From contig CATNEN010000009.1 of assembly GCA_950097015.1 (NCBI GenBank), forward strand, positions 682,001 to 746,000: a stretch of 64,000 bases of DNA, given 5' to 3'. Origin of the DNA: Macrostomum hystrix. Taxonomy: Eukaryota > Animalia > Platyhelminthes. Shown piece after piece: positions 6,572 to 54,995 of the stretch. The position numbers and the translations under genes are program-made. Each line of letters begins with the position of its first letter. The first letter of the stretch is position 1. Under the pieces are notes generated by a model, which made no database searches, was not told where the DNA came from, and saw nothing but the letters and a program-made list of their open reading frames with translations.

Positions 6572-9342
6572 AATTGTCAATTCAATTCATTTAATTGGCG
6601 GGCCTCTCAGTGCAGGCAGAGAAGATATAAAACTCATAATGAAATAACTGAGCATTTACGGAGCCGAGAGGAGACGGGCGCTCAATTGAAGCTCATGGAG
6701 TATCAGGATGGGTTAAAAAAATAAGCGGAGGAGGTGGGTGCTGTGGTCTACTACAGAGAAGACTCAGGTTGATTTATAAAATGTCCGCGTACGCTGAGCG
6801 CAGAGGGGCGTTTAAATTTAACTTATTGAAATTGCACCTGACTGAGTGGAGAGAGGAATGTGCTTACAAATAAGTACGGCGCGGAGAGCTAGATGTCCTC
6901 AAATTCACCTGATTTAAAGATTTAGGTTAGGGTTAGGTTACGGATACGTTAGTTCAATGGATTTTGCGTGATAGGAGCTCGCACGAGAGAAGTTCGCACG
7001 AGAGGAGTTTTATCACCTTAATCTCCTCCGAAGGAGTTTCGCTTCTAATAGAACTAAAGAGCGCACCCTACTGGACGCCAGATACGGTCCACGAAGAGAA
7101 CAAGCTGAGATAGCGAAACCAGATCGAATCAGTGGAGCGAGCGCGAGGGGGAGAGGCCGGTTAAAATAGGCCATATAACATTATCATAATTAATATCCAG
7201 GCACGGGGTACGTTGGCTAGAGTAGACAACACAAAGAAAGAACGCACACTGAAACGTGGCGGCGTTTGATTGTCTGATTGATGAGAAATAATTCATTACA
7301 GTTGCGCAAGCGGCTGATGTTCGTACTTTAACGTTTACTGCCATAGTAAAAATGATGTGAATTTTGCATGCATAACTACAGAATTATACAATTATAGACG
7401 CGCAAAAGCAGAGGCGCGTTGCACGCAGCAAGTGACGTCACAGGCTTAATTAGTGTACGAGCAGCCTTTCCGGAGTAAATCTGAGCTACATTTACATAAA
7501 TGCTCTCAGCCTGTTTGTACATGTATACAAAACGATTGTCGATGCAATATAGCTATATCTCGTTTACTATTTTGGCATTGCTAGTCATGTCAGAGAGAGG
7601 ATTCTACAGTAGCAGAAGATATGTTGAATGAAACATTCGTTGATGAATTGTGCTTGATCATTTTGGTAGTCATGGAAAGTATTCTATTTCAGGACTATTC
7701 ACTCTGCATGTAATCGTACCTTGCTTTTAAAGCAAGCAAGATAAAGAGAATTATTATCTGCAAAGCGTTTTCACGATTTCTTTCAACATTTCTTTTCAGA
7801 AGTAGAACCATCTGGAGGCACCACTAAAAGGGGCACAAGAGTCACCCTGATCACGGAAGGCGCCACGCCTCGTCGCATTGCCGGTTGCGGCTGGCCGCCT
7901 TGCAGAATAGACAGTCGTCCTCGTCAGCCTCATTGTCGTCAGCCCCGACTTTCTTTCGTCTCACAGGGTACGCTGCCTGACTAACTCCGTGTCTGCTTGG
8001 CGCTCTTGAGAAACACCGGACCAAGTCGCTCACCCCTTAAACCGAGAGATATGGAGTCTGCTCCTGTTGCTCGCTAAGTCAGTCCTCGGTGACTCGCCCT
8101 GCTCCTCGCCATTCCTGCAATCCTAGCGTCACAGGATCGGACTGTAACCTCCGACCAGGAATAACAACAACAAATATGTCCATGTCAATTTCATTATATA
8201 ATAAATAATAGACGAACGAGCCGTATTATTACATTCAAATGTAAAGAAGAGCAGAAATGAGAGCATTTATAGAATTATTATCTGGTTTCTATTTATATCC
8301 AAATAGTTTTCACAGTGGAAGCTAGCTAACGTAAGTAGGTTAAGTGATCGAGATAGGCATCTCAAAATTACAAACTTATTTAAATTACTTTGAAAGTGAA
8401 TCAGATTTCATGTCACAAAAATAACGGCATGTGAAAATAAACAAAATATAGACTGTCCTGTGGATGAGCAAGAACAGAAAGTTTATGCAGCGAAAGAAGA
8501 CAAATTATATAAACTATAATATAATGTACTAAGCCCTAAGGAAATGGTAGGTACTGATCTGCGAAGCAATTACCTATTCCTGCTGTGATACCGATCAACT
8601 TCAAGTCAAGTCAGATCAAATCAGAAGCGGAAAAAATATTTCATAGACATGCAAAGCCGGCCACTTAGTGAAAAAATATTTCATTGACGTAGTCGGTCTA
8701 ACAACTCCTATTTAGTAAGAGAAAACACAAAAATTGAAACTTTTAAATAAGCCTAGGTCATTATATAGCTAGTACTCACACGACAAACGACTATACCAAT
8801 TGAGCAATGATGGACATATAGTTAAAGATTTTGAACAGTCTAACACGTCTAGCATGCAAGCTTTACAACAACACAGCTAACAGAAGCATGAGTAGGTCCT
8901 AAAAATTTTCACAGAGCACAATTAATACACTCGATTTGCATATAGTAAAATGAAAGATACAATAGCAAAGAGTATAGTTCAACATTTAGTAACAAAAATA
9001 ATAGACGAGCAAAGTGATTTTTGAAACAACTAGAAGATTAGGCTTTTAAATAGTTTTGAAATTTATACTTTGCCAAGCCGAAATATGCGTGAATTTAGAA
9101 ATCAATATGAAAGTATGAGATACAAGCAATAAAAACGCGAGTTATCAGTGCTCAAATAAGAACTGATAAGGCTGACTTCAGTTTTAAGTTTTAGGTTTAA
9201 GTCTTTAGGGTTTTAAGTCAAAGTTTAAGATAAGGACATGAAAAGCAAGCTGCTCATGGCATAGCGACAAATAATTTTTAAACGTTTTAAACATCGGAAC
9301 GCACAGCACTGCATACTTCAGGAGTAATAATTTCAGCCATTG

Positions 9343-49862: not shown

Positions 49863-50905
49863 TACTCCCAGATATCAGGGCTGTCACTCTGGCACTCCCA
49901 GATACCAGGGCTGGGACTCTGGCACTCCCAGATACCAGGGCTGGGACTCTGGCACTCCCAGATACCATGGCTGGGACTCTGGCACTCCCAGATACGAGGG
50001 CTGGGACTCTGGCACTCCCAGATACCAGGGCTGGGACTCTGGCACTCCCAGATACCATGGCTGGGACTCTGGCACTCCCAGATACGAGGGCTGGGACTCT
50101 GGCACTCCCAGATACCAGGGCTGTCACTCTGGCACTCCCAGATACGAGGGCTGGGACTCTGGCACTCCCAGATACCAGGGCTGGGACTCTGGCACTCCCA
50201 GATACCATGGCTGGGACTCTGGCACTCCCAGATACGAGGGCTGGGACTCTGGCACTCCCAGATACCAGGGCTGTCACTCTGGCACTCCCAGATACGAGGG
50301 CTGGGACTCTGGAACTCCCAGAAGCCAGGGCTGGCACTCCCAGATACCATGGCTGGGACTCTGGCACTCCCAGATACCATGGCTGGGACTCTGGCACTCC
50401 CAGATACCAGGGCTGGGACTCTGGCACTCCCAGATACGGGGCTGGGACTCTGGCACTCCCAGATACCAGGGCTGGCACTCCCAGATACCAGGGCTGGGAC
50501 TCTGGCACTCCCAGATACCAGGGCTGGCACTCCCAGATACCAGGGCTGGGACTCTGGCACTCCCAGATACGAGGGCTGGGACTCTGGCACTCCCAGATAC
50601 GAGGGCTGGGACTCTGGCACTCCCAGATACCAGGGCTGTCACTCTGGCACTCCCAGATACGAGGGCTGGCACTCCCAGATACCAGGGCTGGGACTCTGGC
50701 ACTCCCAGATACCAGGGCTGGGACTCTGGCACTCCCAGATACCAGGGCTGGCACTCCCAGATACCAGGGCTGGGACTCTGGCACTCCCAGATACCAGGGC
50801 TGGCACTCCCAGATACCAGGGCTGGGACTCTGGCACTCCCAGATACCATGGCTGGGACTCTGGCACTCCCACAGACCAAGGCTGGCACTCCCATGTACCA
50901 GGGCT
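49863..50905. repeat. 30-bp minisatellite with 20-bp deletion variants
   Basis: ggcactcccagataccagggctgggactct. The many overlapping ORFs here are artefacts. Confidence 0.96.
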
Positions 50906-50939
50906 GTCACACAGTCACTACCCACATACCCAGGTTTGT

Positions 50940-51500
50940 CACTCCCAGAATCCTATTGTACTAGTCACACCCTAAATCCTCCTATTGTACTAGTTGCACC
51001 CCAAATCCTCCTATTGTACTTGTTACACCCCAAATCCTCTAATTCTACTAGTTGCACCCCAAATCCTCCTATTGTACTTGTTACACCCCAAATCCTCCTA
51101 TTGTACTTGTTACACCCCAAATCCTCCTATTGTACTTGTTACACCCCAAATCCTCCAATTCTACTAGAGACACCCTAAATCCTCCAATTCTACTAGTTGC
51201 ACCCCAAATCTTCCTATTCTACTTGTTTCACCCCAAATCCTCGTATTGTACTAGGTACAACCCCAAATCTTCGTATTGTACTAGGTACAACCCCAAATCC
51301 TCGTATTGTACTAGGTACAACCCCAAATCCTCGAATTTTGCATGTTTTTCTCCCAAATCTTCCTATTGTACTTGTCACACCCCAAATCCTCCTATTGTAC
51401 TAGGTACATTCTCAGATCCTCAAGCTTTGCATGTTTTTCTCCCATATCCTCCTATTGTACTAGTTATACCCGCAAATCCTCATATTGCATCAGCTTCACT
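50940..51500. repeat. Second, degenerate 30-bp minisatellite
   Basis: caccccaaatcctcctattgtacttgtta, decaying rightwards. Confidence 0.9.
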
Positions 51501-51958
51501 CCGAAATACCTCATACTGTACATGCTACACTCGACTCTCGCTTCCAAAGTTGTACATTTCCCAACCCATGGTGCCAGGTAGTTAAATAGATTGCGATTCA
51601 GCAAGGTAACTGAGGCTGTATCCGTGCATTTGTGTCCCTCAGCATTCCAGATCCGAAGAACAAATATGATTAACGACCAAAGAGAAGGATAAACAAATTA
51701 GCGTATATTCTAGGTGATAAGTTGGCAATTACACAAAGCCGGTTGCACTGCATAAATATAGGAATTAAGCTTGCCGTATTGCCAATGTCTGTTAAGAAAT
51801 CGTAAGCGCGTGAGTTAAGTAGCGATCGTGAGTAGTGAGTGAGTAGTATGCGAAGGAAAAGAGCTGCGATGTGAGTTAGTCCGTCCAAAATGACTCGATT
51901 TAGCTTTCGGCGATTTTGCTTGAGCTTCAACGCAAGACCTTGATTTCTAGCAGCGGAG

Positions 51959-52348
51959 TCACATGCCCTGCGAGATGAAGTGCTGCCGCATGTCGCCCAG
52001 CATGTCGGCGGCACGGCCGGGGGCGCCATCGTAGGCCGCGGCCAGCAGTGCGGTGTTGGTCTTGCACACCAGCAGCGTCTGGCCGCGAGGCTCGTCGGCG
52101 CCGCACAGAATGTCCCGCGAGCCCGCCTCCTCCAGCAGGCTGTAGACCGTGTCGGCCAGGCCGAAACCAGCCGCGGAGAACACCGAGCGGCTGTCGAAGT
52201 TCTCGCGCAGGGTCGCCACCTGCTCCACGGTGGGCGTGAAGTCGGCGGGGTTGCAGGCCAGCACGGCGCCGCTGCTCAGGCTGCACACCGCGGCCCGCTT
52301 GAAGGCTCCGGTGCCGATGAAGCTCTTGTTGACGATGCTGGACCACAT
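51959..52348 (-). CDS. Profilin domain (129 aa from its own ATG)
   Basis: [85 protein letters not shown] matches the profilin layout (W..IV...G.G....AA, KT...L...YD..PG....L..YL...G). Confidence 0.88.
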   Translation of the reverse strand: MWSSIVNKSFIGTGAFKRAAVCSLSSGAVLACNPADFTPTVEQVATLRENFDSRSVFSAAGFGLADTVYSLLEEAGSRDILCGADEPRGQTLLVCKTNTALLAAAYDGAPGRAADMLGDMRQHFISQGM

Positions 52349-54323
52349 CTCCGTGTGCGGGCCCTGCTCTAGCTGCGGGAGGATGCGGAGTCAGGAGTCT
52401 GGCTCTCGCTACTCACAGTAGCAACTATTGGCCTTCATTTGGTCTCATATCTGGTCTCCTATCTGATTGGCTTATCGGAATAAAGCTGAGAACCCGAGCC
52501 CTTCTCTCCCTACTCCTACCGTGGCTGACAAACCAGCATGGGCCTCTTATCGCACCCTGGCATTCTAGATTGGGTCGCCCTCTTCCATATCTACACTTGC
52601 CAGTGGATATCAGGAAAACTTTCAAAAGGCAAGCCGACACCTTTGAGAAAATAAACATGCCAGTATGGAGCGTTACTCAAGAGCACAATTACAATTTCCT
52701 GAAGCAATAAGCAGTAGGGTTTGGTCTTGAGTAAATGTACTTTTATATACAAGGCGGCCTCTTACTGTCACTCCGGGCTTGGCCTTCACTTGCTTCATGT
52801 CCACCGTACTCCGCTGGAACTCGTCCTGCGCTGCACGCTGCATGTCCTGCTCAGCATCTTCATCGCTTTCGGACACCCCGTTCTGCCCTTCCGCCTTCTC
52901 TGCAGCCGCCTTCTCTGCAGCCGCCTTCTCCTCCGCCTTCTCTGCCGCCGCCTTCTCTGCAGCCGCCTTCTCCTCCGCCTTCTCTGCCGCCGCCTTCTCT
53001 GCCGCCGCCTTCTCTGCCGCCGCCTTCTCTGCCGCCGCCTTCTCTGCCGCCGCCTTCTCAGCCGCCGCCTTTTCTGCAGCCTCCTTCTCTGCAGCCGCCT
53101 TCTCTGCAGCCGCCTTCTCCTCCTCCGCCTTCTCAACCGCCGCCTTCTCTGCAGCCTCCTTCTCTACCGCCGCCTTTGCAGCCGCATTCTCCTCCTCCGC
53201 CTTCTCCTCCTCCGCCTTCTCCTCCTCCGCCTTCTCCTCCTCCGCCTTCTCCTCCTCTGCCTTCTCTGCCGCCGCTTTCTCTGCAGCCGCCTTCTCTGCA
53301 GCCGCCTTCTCCTCCGCCTTCTCTGCCGTCGCCCTCTCTGCAGCCGCAGTCTCCTCCTCTGCCTTCTTCTCCTCCGCCTTCTCCTCTGCCTTCTCTGCCG
53401 CCGCCTTCTCCTCCTCTGCCTTCTCTGCCGCCGCTTTCTCTGCAGCCGCCTTCTCTGCAGCCGCCTTCTCCTCCGCCTTCTCTGCCGTCGCCCTCTCTGC
53501 AGCCGCAGTCTCCTCCTCTGCCTTCTTCTCCTCCGCCTTCTCCTCTGCCTTCTCTGCCGCCGCCTTCTCCTCCGCCTTCTCTGCCGCCGCCTTCTCCTCC
53601 GCCTTCTCTGCCGCCGCCTTCTCCTCCGCCTTCTCTGCCGCCGCCTTCTCCTCCGCCTTCTCTGCCGCCGCCTTCTCCTCCGCCTTCTCTGCCGCCGCCT
53701 TCTCCTCCGTGTTCTTCGCTGGCTCCTTGCCGGAATTCGATGCCAGCTCCAAGAGCGGTCTCGGTGGATTCGCAGGCCGAGCAGGCTGCTGCTGCTGCTG
53801 CTGTTGCTGTTGCTCCGCTTCGGTTGATTCAACCGATTCCGCCACAGCTGGCGATGGAGTATCCAGCTGCAGCTCCTCTGGCTCCAGCTGCTGCTCCTGC
53901 TGCTCATGATCCTATAAAGCAGTGATGTAATTTTTCGCCCATGAACCCATTTAGTTTTGATAGAGGAATTATCAGAAAGACAGCATGCAATGGAGTAAAT
54001 AGAAACCTCATGCAGAAAGCTGCCAACCCTCCCTCCGCCAATGCATGTACCTTCACGGTGCCGCCCTTGATGCCCTTGCTCTTCTTCGGCTTTTCCGACG
54101 GCTTCTTGTGCGTCTCCTCGGCCTCGCCGTCCGCTTCAGTTCGCTTCTTCCGGCGGAAAAGGCCGCCGCAGCCCAGCTTCACGGCGTCGTTCGGCCTGTC
54201 GGCTGGCGGCTTGTCCTTCTTGCGCAGCAGGCCGCGGATCCGCTGCCCGATGCCTCCGGGCTGCTGGCCGTTGGCTGCCTCCGTGGGCTCGATCTCCTTG
54301 ACGTCTGTGGCGGCTTCGGCCAT
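51959..54323 (-). CDS. Predicted 3-exon, 610-aa fusion: basic N-terminus, Glu/Ala/Lys helical repeats, C-terminal profilin
   Basis: Exons 54323-54051 (donor AAG|GTACAT), 53911-52766 (acceptor tttatag|, donor ACA|GTAAGA) and 52372-51959 (acceptor tcctcccgcag|). All junctions are phase 0, total 1833 nt, no internal stop. Junction reads KAKPGVT|[14 protein letters not shown]. Confidence 0.7.
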
Positions 54324-54995
54324 GGCTGAACTGCTTAGGCGAGGGGTCGAGGCGAGGTCGGACGCAACTTTGAAACAAAAGGCGCGAAATGCGCGAGCCG
54401 ATTATAAATATTCGCCTTGGACTTCCTGCCAGCCCCTGCCCCGCCCCCTCCGCTTTCTCCGCTGCGCCTATGGCAAAGTGAAATCGAAATGGCTTGAATT
54501 CTGGCAGTTTGTGCGATAAGCAGCGCAACAGCCACCCCCGCGCCGCCTTGGGGTGGGTGGGTGTTTGAGAGGCTGCGCTGCCACCCACTCGGCCTGGCAA
54601 ACTGCGCTCTTCGTGTAAACTGCTGCAGAGAGCGAACTGGCATTTCCTGTTGCTTCAAATTTCCACACCCCCTCACAATGGCCCAGCAGTATCTCTCTCG
54701 CTGAAAGGTAATTCCGCAGCTCGCAATGCTTTAAAAGTTGAATGGCAGCTTTTGTTTCTGCTTGGGGACGGGAGGCCTTGCCGAGTAGCCGCACTTGAGT
54801 TCGACAATCCACGAAATGCCTTTTAAGAGCTAAGAGTATACTTCGGCTGTTGACCTCTTTGTGCTCTGGCTTAAGATAAACACAGAAATGCTCAGTTCCA
54901 GACACGCTCCGGTTAAGCACAGAGGGCTGTCCCGGGTTCCATTTCATGAATTAACAACCATCAAAAAGGCCTTCAAACCCCCTGATCAGTTAGCA

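Follow-up and report, generated by a model that had tools for sequence, protein, structure and literature searches.

In textbooks, profilin stands for a small, free actin regulator with a single domain. A locus of the flatworm Macrostomum hystrix at which a profilin reading frame follows a long E/K/A-rich repeat raises the question whether both belong to one protein and, if so, what such a fusion could do. The locus occupies positions 51959–54323 of the 64,000-nt stretch of Macrostomum DNA analysed here (hereafter the window) and is read on the minus strand. A first reading of the letters alone (the original prediction) had proposed a profilin fused to an EKAAA-type helical rod and up to three products from the one locus. 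Transcript contigs bear out the fusion, and comparison with relatives indicates that its layout is old while the long repeat is specific to the window species. We regard it as reasonably probable that the locus is a single cis-spliced gene in which an alternative cassette acts as a spacer behind an anchoring N-terminal module, and that it belongs to an old and so far undescribed family of flatworm profilin-like proteins with N-terminal extensions. The gene shows an entire animal lineage in which the profilin-fold domain stays permanently attached to a conserved basic module, and it provides a testable natural case of a tethered profilin.

Splicing of the locus and its isoforms

Transcript evidence was drawn from four public runs (X1, X2, X5 and X6) of two studies, which were placed on positions 51700–54600. 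The runs are stored as contigs, which hide rare forms and can give neither isoform ratios nor the repeat length in the mRNA, and their RNA nature was deduced from the contig depth: as both introns showed depth 0 next to exon depths of 14–120, with low-level unspliced intron 2 confined to X5 and X6, we take the data to be RNA. On account of the same depths, we reject the possibilities that the runs are DNA or that a retrogene lies behind the joints.

The joint 52372/52766, with GT..AG on the gene strand, was present in all four runs; in X1 and X2, contigs extend at least 150 nt to either side of it. Record 1 of X1 (815 nt) leads from the 3′ untranslated region (UTR) at 51713 through exon 3 into exon 2. 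The joint of intron 1 was likewise found in four of four runs. Because four runs from two studies carry the exact 52766 to 52372 joint, the fusion transcript comprising the basic N-terminus, the repeat and the profilin is real and beyond chance. The original prediction had paired precisely this donor and acceptor in a stop-free, phase-0 join and had named the lack of such spliced reads as the finding that would overturn it; both sites lie where it had placed them, and the joint is seen in the RNA contigs of every run. The basic N-terminus assigned to the fusion is also confirmed, as exon 1 (pI 9.8) is cis-spliced in the transcripts. The resulting gene model is composed of the following features:

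54324–54457, minus strand: 5′ UTR; record 6 of RNA contig X1 reaches 54457, whereas record 20 of X5 ends at 54367
about 54410–54402, minus strand: TATA-like TATTTATAA in the 5′ UTR, read from the sequence
54051–54323, minus strand: coding part of exon 1, with ATG at 54323, 91 codons and the basic N-terminal module (by translation)
53912–54050, minus strand: intron 1, 139 nt, GT..AG; joint 53910/54050 in four of four runs, depth 0 inside
52766–53911, minus strand: exon 2, a 382-codon phase 0-0 cassette that is alternatively skipped (translation and RNA contigs)
52892–53707, minus strand: coding minisatellite of about 54 units (15-bp period) that encodes 272 aa of helix-prone EKAAA/EKAE(E) repeat (Tandem Repeats Finder, TRF, and composition)
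52766–52828, minus strand: conserved tail of exon 2 (FQ-x-S/T-VDM...KPGVT) with donor context (alignment with M. lignano and its paralogue P0003)
52373–52765, minus strand: intron 2, 393 nt, GTAAGA...CCGCAG
52673–52675, minus strand: first in-frame stop (TAA) upon retention of intron 2, at a depth of about 3% of exon depth
51959–52372, minus strand: coding part of exon 3, in which a conserved lead-in of 8 residues (LEQGPHTE) is followed by the profilin-fold domain and the TGA stop (Pfam, AlphaFold2, Foldseek and omega)
51713–51958, minus strand: 3′ UTR; record 1 of X1 ends at 51713, and X6 continues past 51700

All exon junctions are in phase 0 and stop-free, and the exons differ from the introns in GC content (65–69% vs 42–47%). 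Exon 2 closes on the codon ACA, with the donor GTAAGA beginning at 52765, while exon 3 carries an ATG at 52348 after 8 codons, followed by the 129-aa profilin and TGA. The long form thus amounts to 91 + 382 + 137 = 610 aa.

A second product, which the original prediction had not foreseen, arises from skipping of exon 2. The corresponding joint 52372/54051 was found in X5 and X6, both of which match the window without mismatches, and it is in frame, giving 91 + 137 = 228 aa for the short form without the cassette. Contig depth at the skip joint was 43.7 and 30.2 in X5 and X6, compared with 70.7 and 59.8 at the exon-2/exon-3 joint, and the two joints summed approximately to the depth of exon 3 and exon 1. 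Both forms are hence substantial in these runs, contig depths being a poor measure of their ratio. In X1 and X2, inclusion of the cassette was the major or sole form seen.

Postulated free-profilin and read-through products

The alternative arrangement of two adjacent genes or an operon, in which a repeat protein ends at 52673 and a free profilin starts from the ATG at 52348 or from a spliced leader (SL) at 52372, has been largely refuted by these data and is very improbable. It can refer to the ATG lying 24 nt behind the acceptor, to low-depth contigs covering part of intron 2, and to the Macrostomum SL, which ends in ATG (PMC8629364) and would therefore be in frame at the phase-0 acceptor 52372. 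An SL-driven free profilin would be chemically possible in this way, but finds no support at 52372: every run joins this acceptor to 52766, and no SL-joined contig or loose end was seen there in the contigs of the four runs, which can drop rare forms. Moreover, only 0.2–1.4% of the genes of two sister species have several SL sites (PMC10468722).

Intron 2 itself was covered at depths of 2.4–3.3 between 52502 and 52721, i.e. about 3–4% of exon depth, and at depth 0 over 52379–52475. The rod-only form expected from read-through to the TAA at 52675–52673 looks like pre-mRNA at this level, and its read-through tail is not conserved, a stop following after 3 codons in the M. lignano locus L001. From the three products once envisaged, the fusion is therefore retained, while neither the SL-spliced profilin nor the rod-only protein is upheld.

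The start codon proposed for a free profilin is not conserved either. Met at 52348 corresponds to Ile (ATA) in both M. lignano copies and to M, I, L, V or T across the clade described below, which marks the residue as a hydrophobic position rather than an initiator. About nine residues preceding the canonical N-terminal Trp are conserved in the clade (phi-E/D-Q-x4-E/D-phi-W), and the conserved domain therefore starts at the exon-3 acceptor. Because Ile takes the place of this Met in M. lignano and the domain begins at an exon boundary, we conclude that the profilin is built for tethering and is probably not produced as a separate protein.

Conservation of the layout among flatworms

Homology searches were run per exon, whereas full-length comparisons were made through the database proteins P0001, P0002, P0003 and P0036. 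A word-index search with exon 3 retrieved a single protein, M. lignano P0001 (BOX15_Mlig020979g1; 227 aa, 86% identical), in which exon 1 is joined straight to exon 3 and which thus represents the short form. The exon 1 product is 68% identical to the N-terminus of P0001, with an omega of 0.44; exon 3 has an omega of 0.23 against M. lignano, while the flanks of exon 2 evolve nearly neutrally. The synonymous divergence (dS) from M. lignano is about 0.4, which points to a different species of Macrostomum. The M. lignano locus L001 (GCA_002269645.1) has the same three-exon structure and contains, inside the intron of P0001, a 125-codon phase-0 exon 2 (6919–7293) with the same flanking motifs (PARPxNPPRPL and FQ-x-x-S-VDM...KPGVT) and the same GTAAG donor. 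P0002 (PAA84161.1, 373 aa) joins exon 1, exon 2 and exon 3 and is the long form of M. lignano. A profilin exon 86–87% identical to that of the window, the N-terminal motifs, the cassette exon and the lead-in are common to the M. lignano proteins; their repeats are confined to 2–6 EENAA units, or to a non-repetitive linker in the paralogue, compared with about 54 units in the window.

An exhaustive phmmer search against 1.84 billion representative proteins gave 21 matches at E ≤ 1e-3, and the profilin domain is C-terminal in all of the best of them (P0001, P0002, P0003, P0023 and P0024). Among these, P0003, P0023 and P0024 form a second M. lignano paralogue group around PAA62789.1 (413–415 aa, 50% identical), with an N-terminal GCGGLFKRK, a non-repetitive linker and the FQRKSVDM motif ahead of the profilin. 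A profile search added only P0036 and P0037. P0036 (243 aa, 80% identical) is encoded without introns on the 934-nt Logan contig L002, in which exon 1 is joined to exon 3 behind a 50-nt 5′ UTR without SL, and represents a third taxon; the short isoform is thereby seen in three taxa and the long isoform in at least two.

The more remote members belong to Schistosoma, Opisthorchis, Paragonimus, Calicophoron, a nemertean and metagenomic or transcript contigs, and most of them carry an N-terminal extension. The trematode proteins (Calicophoron, 264 aa; Opisthorchis felineus, 229 aa; Paragonimus, 167–174 aa) combine a profilin-like domain with the lead-in phi-E/D-Q...W, an Ile at the Tyr6 position and an extension with hydrophobic-Cys-polybasic motifs; they differ in lacking a helical repeat cassette, in longer intradomain loops and in an identity of only 24–26%. 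We define the flatworm N-extended profilin-like clade by a C-terminal profilin-like domain with the lead-in and the Ile at the Tyr6 position, together with the basic/hydrophobic(Cys) N-terminal motifs, all of which are present in the window protein. As the layout is common to two Macrostomum paralogue groups and to trematodes, sequence comparison dates it as old; the long EKAAA cassette, by the same comparison, is specific to the window species. The expectation that related species would show the same architecture thus holds for the layout in M. lignano and trematodes, but not for the long rod.

Databases already hold the extended proteins, if only as hypothetical ones with the UniRef name 'Profilin', and as a sequence the fusion is therefore not new. 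We found no paper in the literature that describes extended flatworm profilins, nor any match to the M. lignano gene IDs. The family would accordingly be one without literature in the parasitic genera Schistosoma, Opisthorchis, Paragonimus and Calicophoron. Fasciola profilin of normal size binds actin and poly-proline (PMC7727368); FhProfilin was not recovered in the clade with a Paragonimus query, a result that is not conclusive.

Several database entries call for a separate remark. P0009 and P0010 (1509 and 1322 aa, 8–11 stretches), considered as poly-profilins, are actually bacterial WD40/CHAT and T9SS repeat proteins that score E ~1e-8 through many short stretches, which advises caution with multi-stretch phmmer matches. 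P0004 (UniRef A0A1I8F4A5, M. lignano, 421 aa), named 'MID_MedPIWI domain-containing protein', seems to be the profilin locus mistranslated in a shifted frame, only profilin and exon-2 motif fragments matching. Both introns of the M. lignano orthologue contain tandem repeats, namely a 9-bp microsatellite of 55 copies in intron 1 (L001 6388–6883) and an 11-bp repeat of 23 copies in intron 2 (L001 7496–7749); the window introns are free of these repeats and measure 139 and 393 nt, compared with 648 and 625 nt in L001.

The profilin-fold domain

The Pfam profilin profile (PF00235) aligned with exon 3 across positions 2–127 of its 127 and scored 57.4 bits against a cutoff of 25, and Acanthamoeba profilin I (1ACF) matched by sequence at E 2.5e-8. 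The profilin fold consists of an antiparallel sheet of 7 strands between an N-terminal and a C-terminal helix. An AlphaFold2 (AF2) model built with the clade alignment reached a pLDDT of 88.6 and a pTM of 0.82 with profilin-like secondary structure, and the top 50 Foldseek matches in the PDB were all profilins or profilin chimeras (TM up to 0.82/0.89), with a TM of 0.81/0.88 and an rmsd of 1.9 Å to 1ACF. The ESM Atlas returned 'profilin' only. Pfam, PDB sequence match and predicted fold thus agree in identifying exon 3 as a divergent profilin-fold domain.

Functional residues were mapped with the lists of PMC2694148 and alignments to 1ACF and to the canonical fungal profilin P0017. The aromatic patch that binds poly-L-proline consists of Trp3, Tyr6, Trp31, His/Tyr133 and Tyr/Phe139, and actin is contacted through Phe59, Arg74, Arg88, Lys90, His119, Lys125 and Tyr128 (PMC2694148). 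The window domain keeps Trp3 and a His at the equivalent of position 133, as in human PFN1, whereas Ile stands for Tyr6, Leu for Trp31, Met for the terminal Tyr and CGADEPRG for the basic GKKG loop. The poly-L-proline patch is therefore incomplete, although this patch is a functional hallmark and not a criterion of family membership. Apart from these residues, the domain resembles canonical profilins (PF00235, 1ACF) in its full-length Pfam match, fold, N-terminal Trp and C-terminal helix, and differs in its conserved lead-in, some nine residues long, and in forming the C-terminal end of a longer protein (228 or 610 aa), whereas canonical profilins are free proteins of about 130 aa. Because the poly-proline site is degenerate, binding of actin and of ligand is unproven, and so is the designation as an actin-monomer-binding module made in the original prediction.

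The E/K/A repeat

The 272 residues encoded by 52892–53707 consist of 44% Ala, 33% Glu and 20% Lys; TRF reported a 15-bp period with 56.7 copies, and 25 EKAAA units stand beside EKAE(E) units. At i+4 spacing, 42 K→E pairs, 2 E→K pairs and 41 same-charge pairs were counted. Since bulky hydrophobic residues (LIVMFWY) make up only 0.7% of the repeat and no Ala stripe is apparent (Ala helical moment 0.10–0.16), the repeat is not a coiled coil. AF2, run on the single sequence, predicted helices at exon-2 residues 69–209 and 222–376 with a pLDDT of 70–87, which weakly indicates either one helix of about 40–45 nm or two arms of about 21–23 nm. Matches of exon 2 to the Pfam families Extensin_1 and HC2 lay below the cutoff, were compositional and were discarded.

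Two kinds of helix lend themselves to comparison, namely designed (EAAAK)n or (KAAAE)n helical peptides and natural single alpha-helix (SAH) domains. The 25 EKAAA units supply K(i)→E(i+4) pairs as in the designed peptides. Natural SAHs are described as rich in R, E and K, with salt bridges as the stabilising element (PMC5347031); they connect two functional domains (PMC4183817, PMC4571873) and serve as springs or leashes (PMC4183817, PMC4571873, PMC5347031). With the ER/K SAH spacers of myosin VI/X, INCENP and drebrin the window repeat shares a long E/K-rich, helix-prone segment between modules and the absence of a hydrophobic seam; it departs from them in its high Ala content, the K→E (i+4) orientation, the predicted break in its middle, its youth and a helicity that is predicted only, and it lacks their very high E/K/R content, dense opposite-charge pairs and near-balanced charge. 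Its composition places it nearer the designed Ala-based helices than the charge-balanced ER/K SAHs (PMC5347031). The helix-prone, seamless character and the long AF2 helices bear out the EKAAA rod initially proposed, which is, however, neither a classical ER/K helix nor a conserved rod.

The window array corresponds to the M. lignano minisatellite in both kind and position, with homologous flanks K-x-TEE and QNG, and two bases distinguish the repeat units GAGAAGGCGGCG and GAGAACGCAGCG of window and M. lignano. The M. lignano array, coding for EENAA, counts 2 copies in L001 and 6 in L003/P0002. Glu is encoded by GAG in 89 of 90 cases and Lys by AAG in 52 of 54. By these comparisons, the repeat is a recent, species-specific minisatellite expansion and not a conserved rod. 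A coding minisatellite can accordingly turn a cassette into what would be a 270-residue helix within the divergence of two congeneric species, which makes the locus a natural experiment on how fast (EKAAA)n helical spacers arise.

The contigs of X1 and X2, which derive from the other study, stop inside the repeat at 53379 and 53510 with the loose ends CTCCTCCTCCTC and CCGGCTCCTGCTCCTCC and carry 4 substitutions relative to the window, which suggests variation of the repeat array among strains or labelled organisms. Both non-synonymous variants fall in exon 2, while the variant in exon 3 is synonymous.

The N-terminal module

No Pfam domain was detected in the N-terminal module, which contains two short motifs:

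54210–54257, minus strand: motif 1, basic and amphipathic (GGIxQRIRGLL+K+), conserved in P0002, P0003 and P0036
54141–54179, minus strand: motif 2, Cys with hydrophobic residues and a polybasic patch, shared by the two Macrostomum paralogue groups, with Calicophoron FGCTGLCAGRRRR as the aligned sequence

Both motifs are conserved in the window, the two M. lignano paralogue groups and P0036. Opisthorchis offers SRWRRMIGWFR as an analogue of motif 1 and SLFSCTMRRSRRSR as the counterpart of motif 2, Calicophoron has the N-terminal counterpart RLFGCTGLCAGRRRR, and one remote clade member begins with MGNKSSS followed by KKRLSIRKKK. The hydrophobic-Cys-polybasic pattern suggests anchoring at the membrane or cortex, perhaps with acylation. 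An assignment of QRIRGLLRK as an IQ motif was dismissed by eye, as the spacing does not fit.

A proposed anchored spacer and competing functions

Based on these features, we propose that the protein is held by its N-terminal module, whose polybasic patches and possibly an acylated Cys would most likely attach to a membrane or cortical partner, and that the cassette would set the reach of the profilin domain from this anchor. The short form would allow almost no reach, and the long form up to about 40 nm, or two arms of about 20 nm. At this reach, the domain would bind its ligand, be it G-actin, a phosphoinositide or another partner, but probably not a classical poly-proline tract. A spacer encoded by an alternative cassette of an actin-related protein has a parallel in caldesmon, the central helix of which is spliced out in the non-muscle isoform. 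A number of observations weigh against the anchored spacer. Anchoring and spacer function are deduced from sequence alone; on the shorter side of the exon-skip joint, only 30 nt are covered, such that an unseen paralogue without exon 2 could in principle explain this joint; and the repeat is 53% charged with a net charge of −34 and thus not a charge-balanced ER/K SAH. The AF2 prediction, which on a single low-complexity sequence is weak evidence, also contains a low-confidence break at exon-2 residues 210–221, an EEEKAEEEK stretch. Furthermore, a 173-bp exact internal duplicate attests to the very young age of the array, and a repeat of this age may be tolerated rather than selected. With regard to the profilin domain, Tyr6 is a nearly invariant Ile in the clade, the residue at Trp31 is never Trp, the CGADEPRG loop is variable across the clade, and the other actin contacts are poorly mappable at 18–28% identity.

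These residue losses would equally fit a domain comparable to mammalian profilin-4 (PFN4), a profilin fold without poly-proline and actin binding that binds phosphoinositides (PMC2694148). It is possible, though less likely than not, that the window domain serves a phosphoinositide or other partner in this manner, in which case the protein would be an adaptor to lipid or cortex rather than a means of delivering actin monomers. PFN4 is a precedent for exactly the loss of the poly-proline patch and canonical actin residues seen across the clade (Tyr6, Trp31, terminal Tyr, GKKG loop); yet it is a free protein of about 129 aa, the window domain keeps Trp3 and the His133 equivalent, and the two are likened by residue losses alone, in a domain whose actin-contact residues cannot be reliably mapped. 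The actin and poly-proline binding of the normal-size flatworm profilin from Fasciola also speaks against such a function, with the reservation that this protein was not recovered in the clade. As for the cassette, the main rival on function is a tolerated, functionless repeat: the E/K/A segment may be a recent, near-neutral minisatellite that persists owing to its solubility and the option to skip it, the short isoform being the functional one, which is possible but falls short of being our expectation. The 2 or 6 units of M. lignano against about 54 at the same site, the exact duplicate, the nearly single codon each for Glu and Lys, the nearly neutral flanks of exon 2, the location of both non-synonymous X1/X2 variants and the occurrence of the short isoform in three taxa all conform to it. 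It does not readily account for a cassette exon whose phase, flanking motifs and inclusion are conserved (in P0002, and in P0003 with a long linker), for inclusion as the major or only form in X1 and X2, or for the shift of the unit from EENAA to EKAAA, which creates helix-favouring K→E i+4 pairs.

A more far-reaching version of the anchored spacer, which we consider unlikely, would be a dedicated flatworm class of membrane-anchored profilin-like proteins whose spliced, fast-evolving cassette sets the distance between anchor and domain, the domain being held at the end of a single alpha-helix, up to about 40 nm away, by the long form and at the membrane by the short form. If true, it would constitute a natural adjustable ruler for the cortical delivery of actin monomers or another ligand. 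Tests of localisation and of the isoforms are feasible in practice, as Macrostomum lignano is transgenic-ready.

Surroundings of the gene

Directly downstream of the profilin gene, two large non-coding tandem arrays occupy positions 50500–51532 of the window. The first has periods of 22/30/52/82 bp (50500–50949) and the second a 29-bp period with 18 copies (50951–51487), and both give rise to long spurious open reading frames at 51052–51585.

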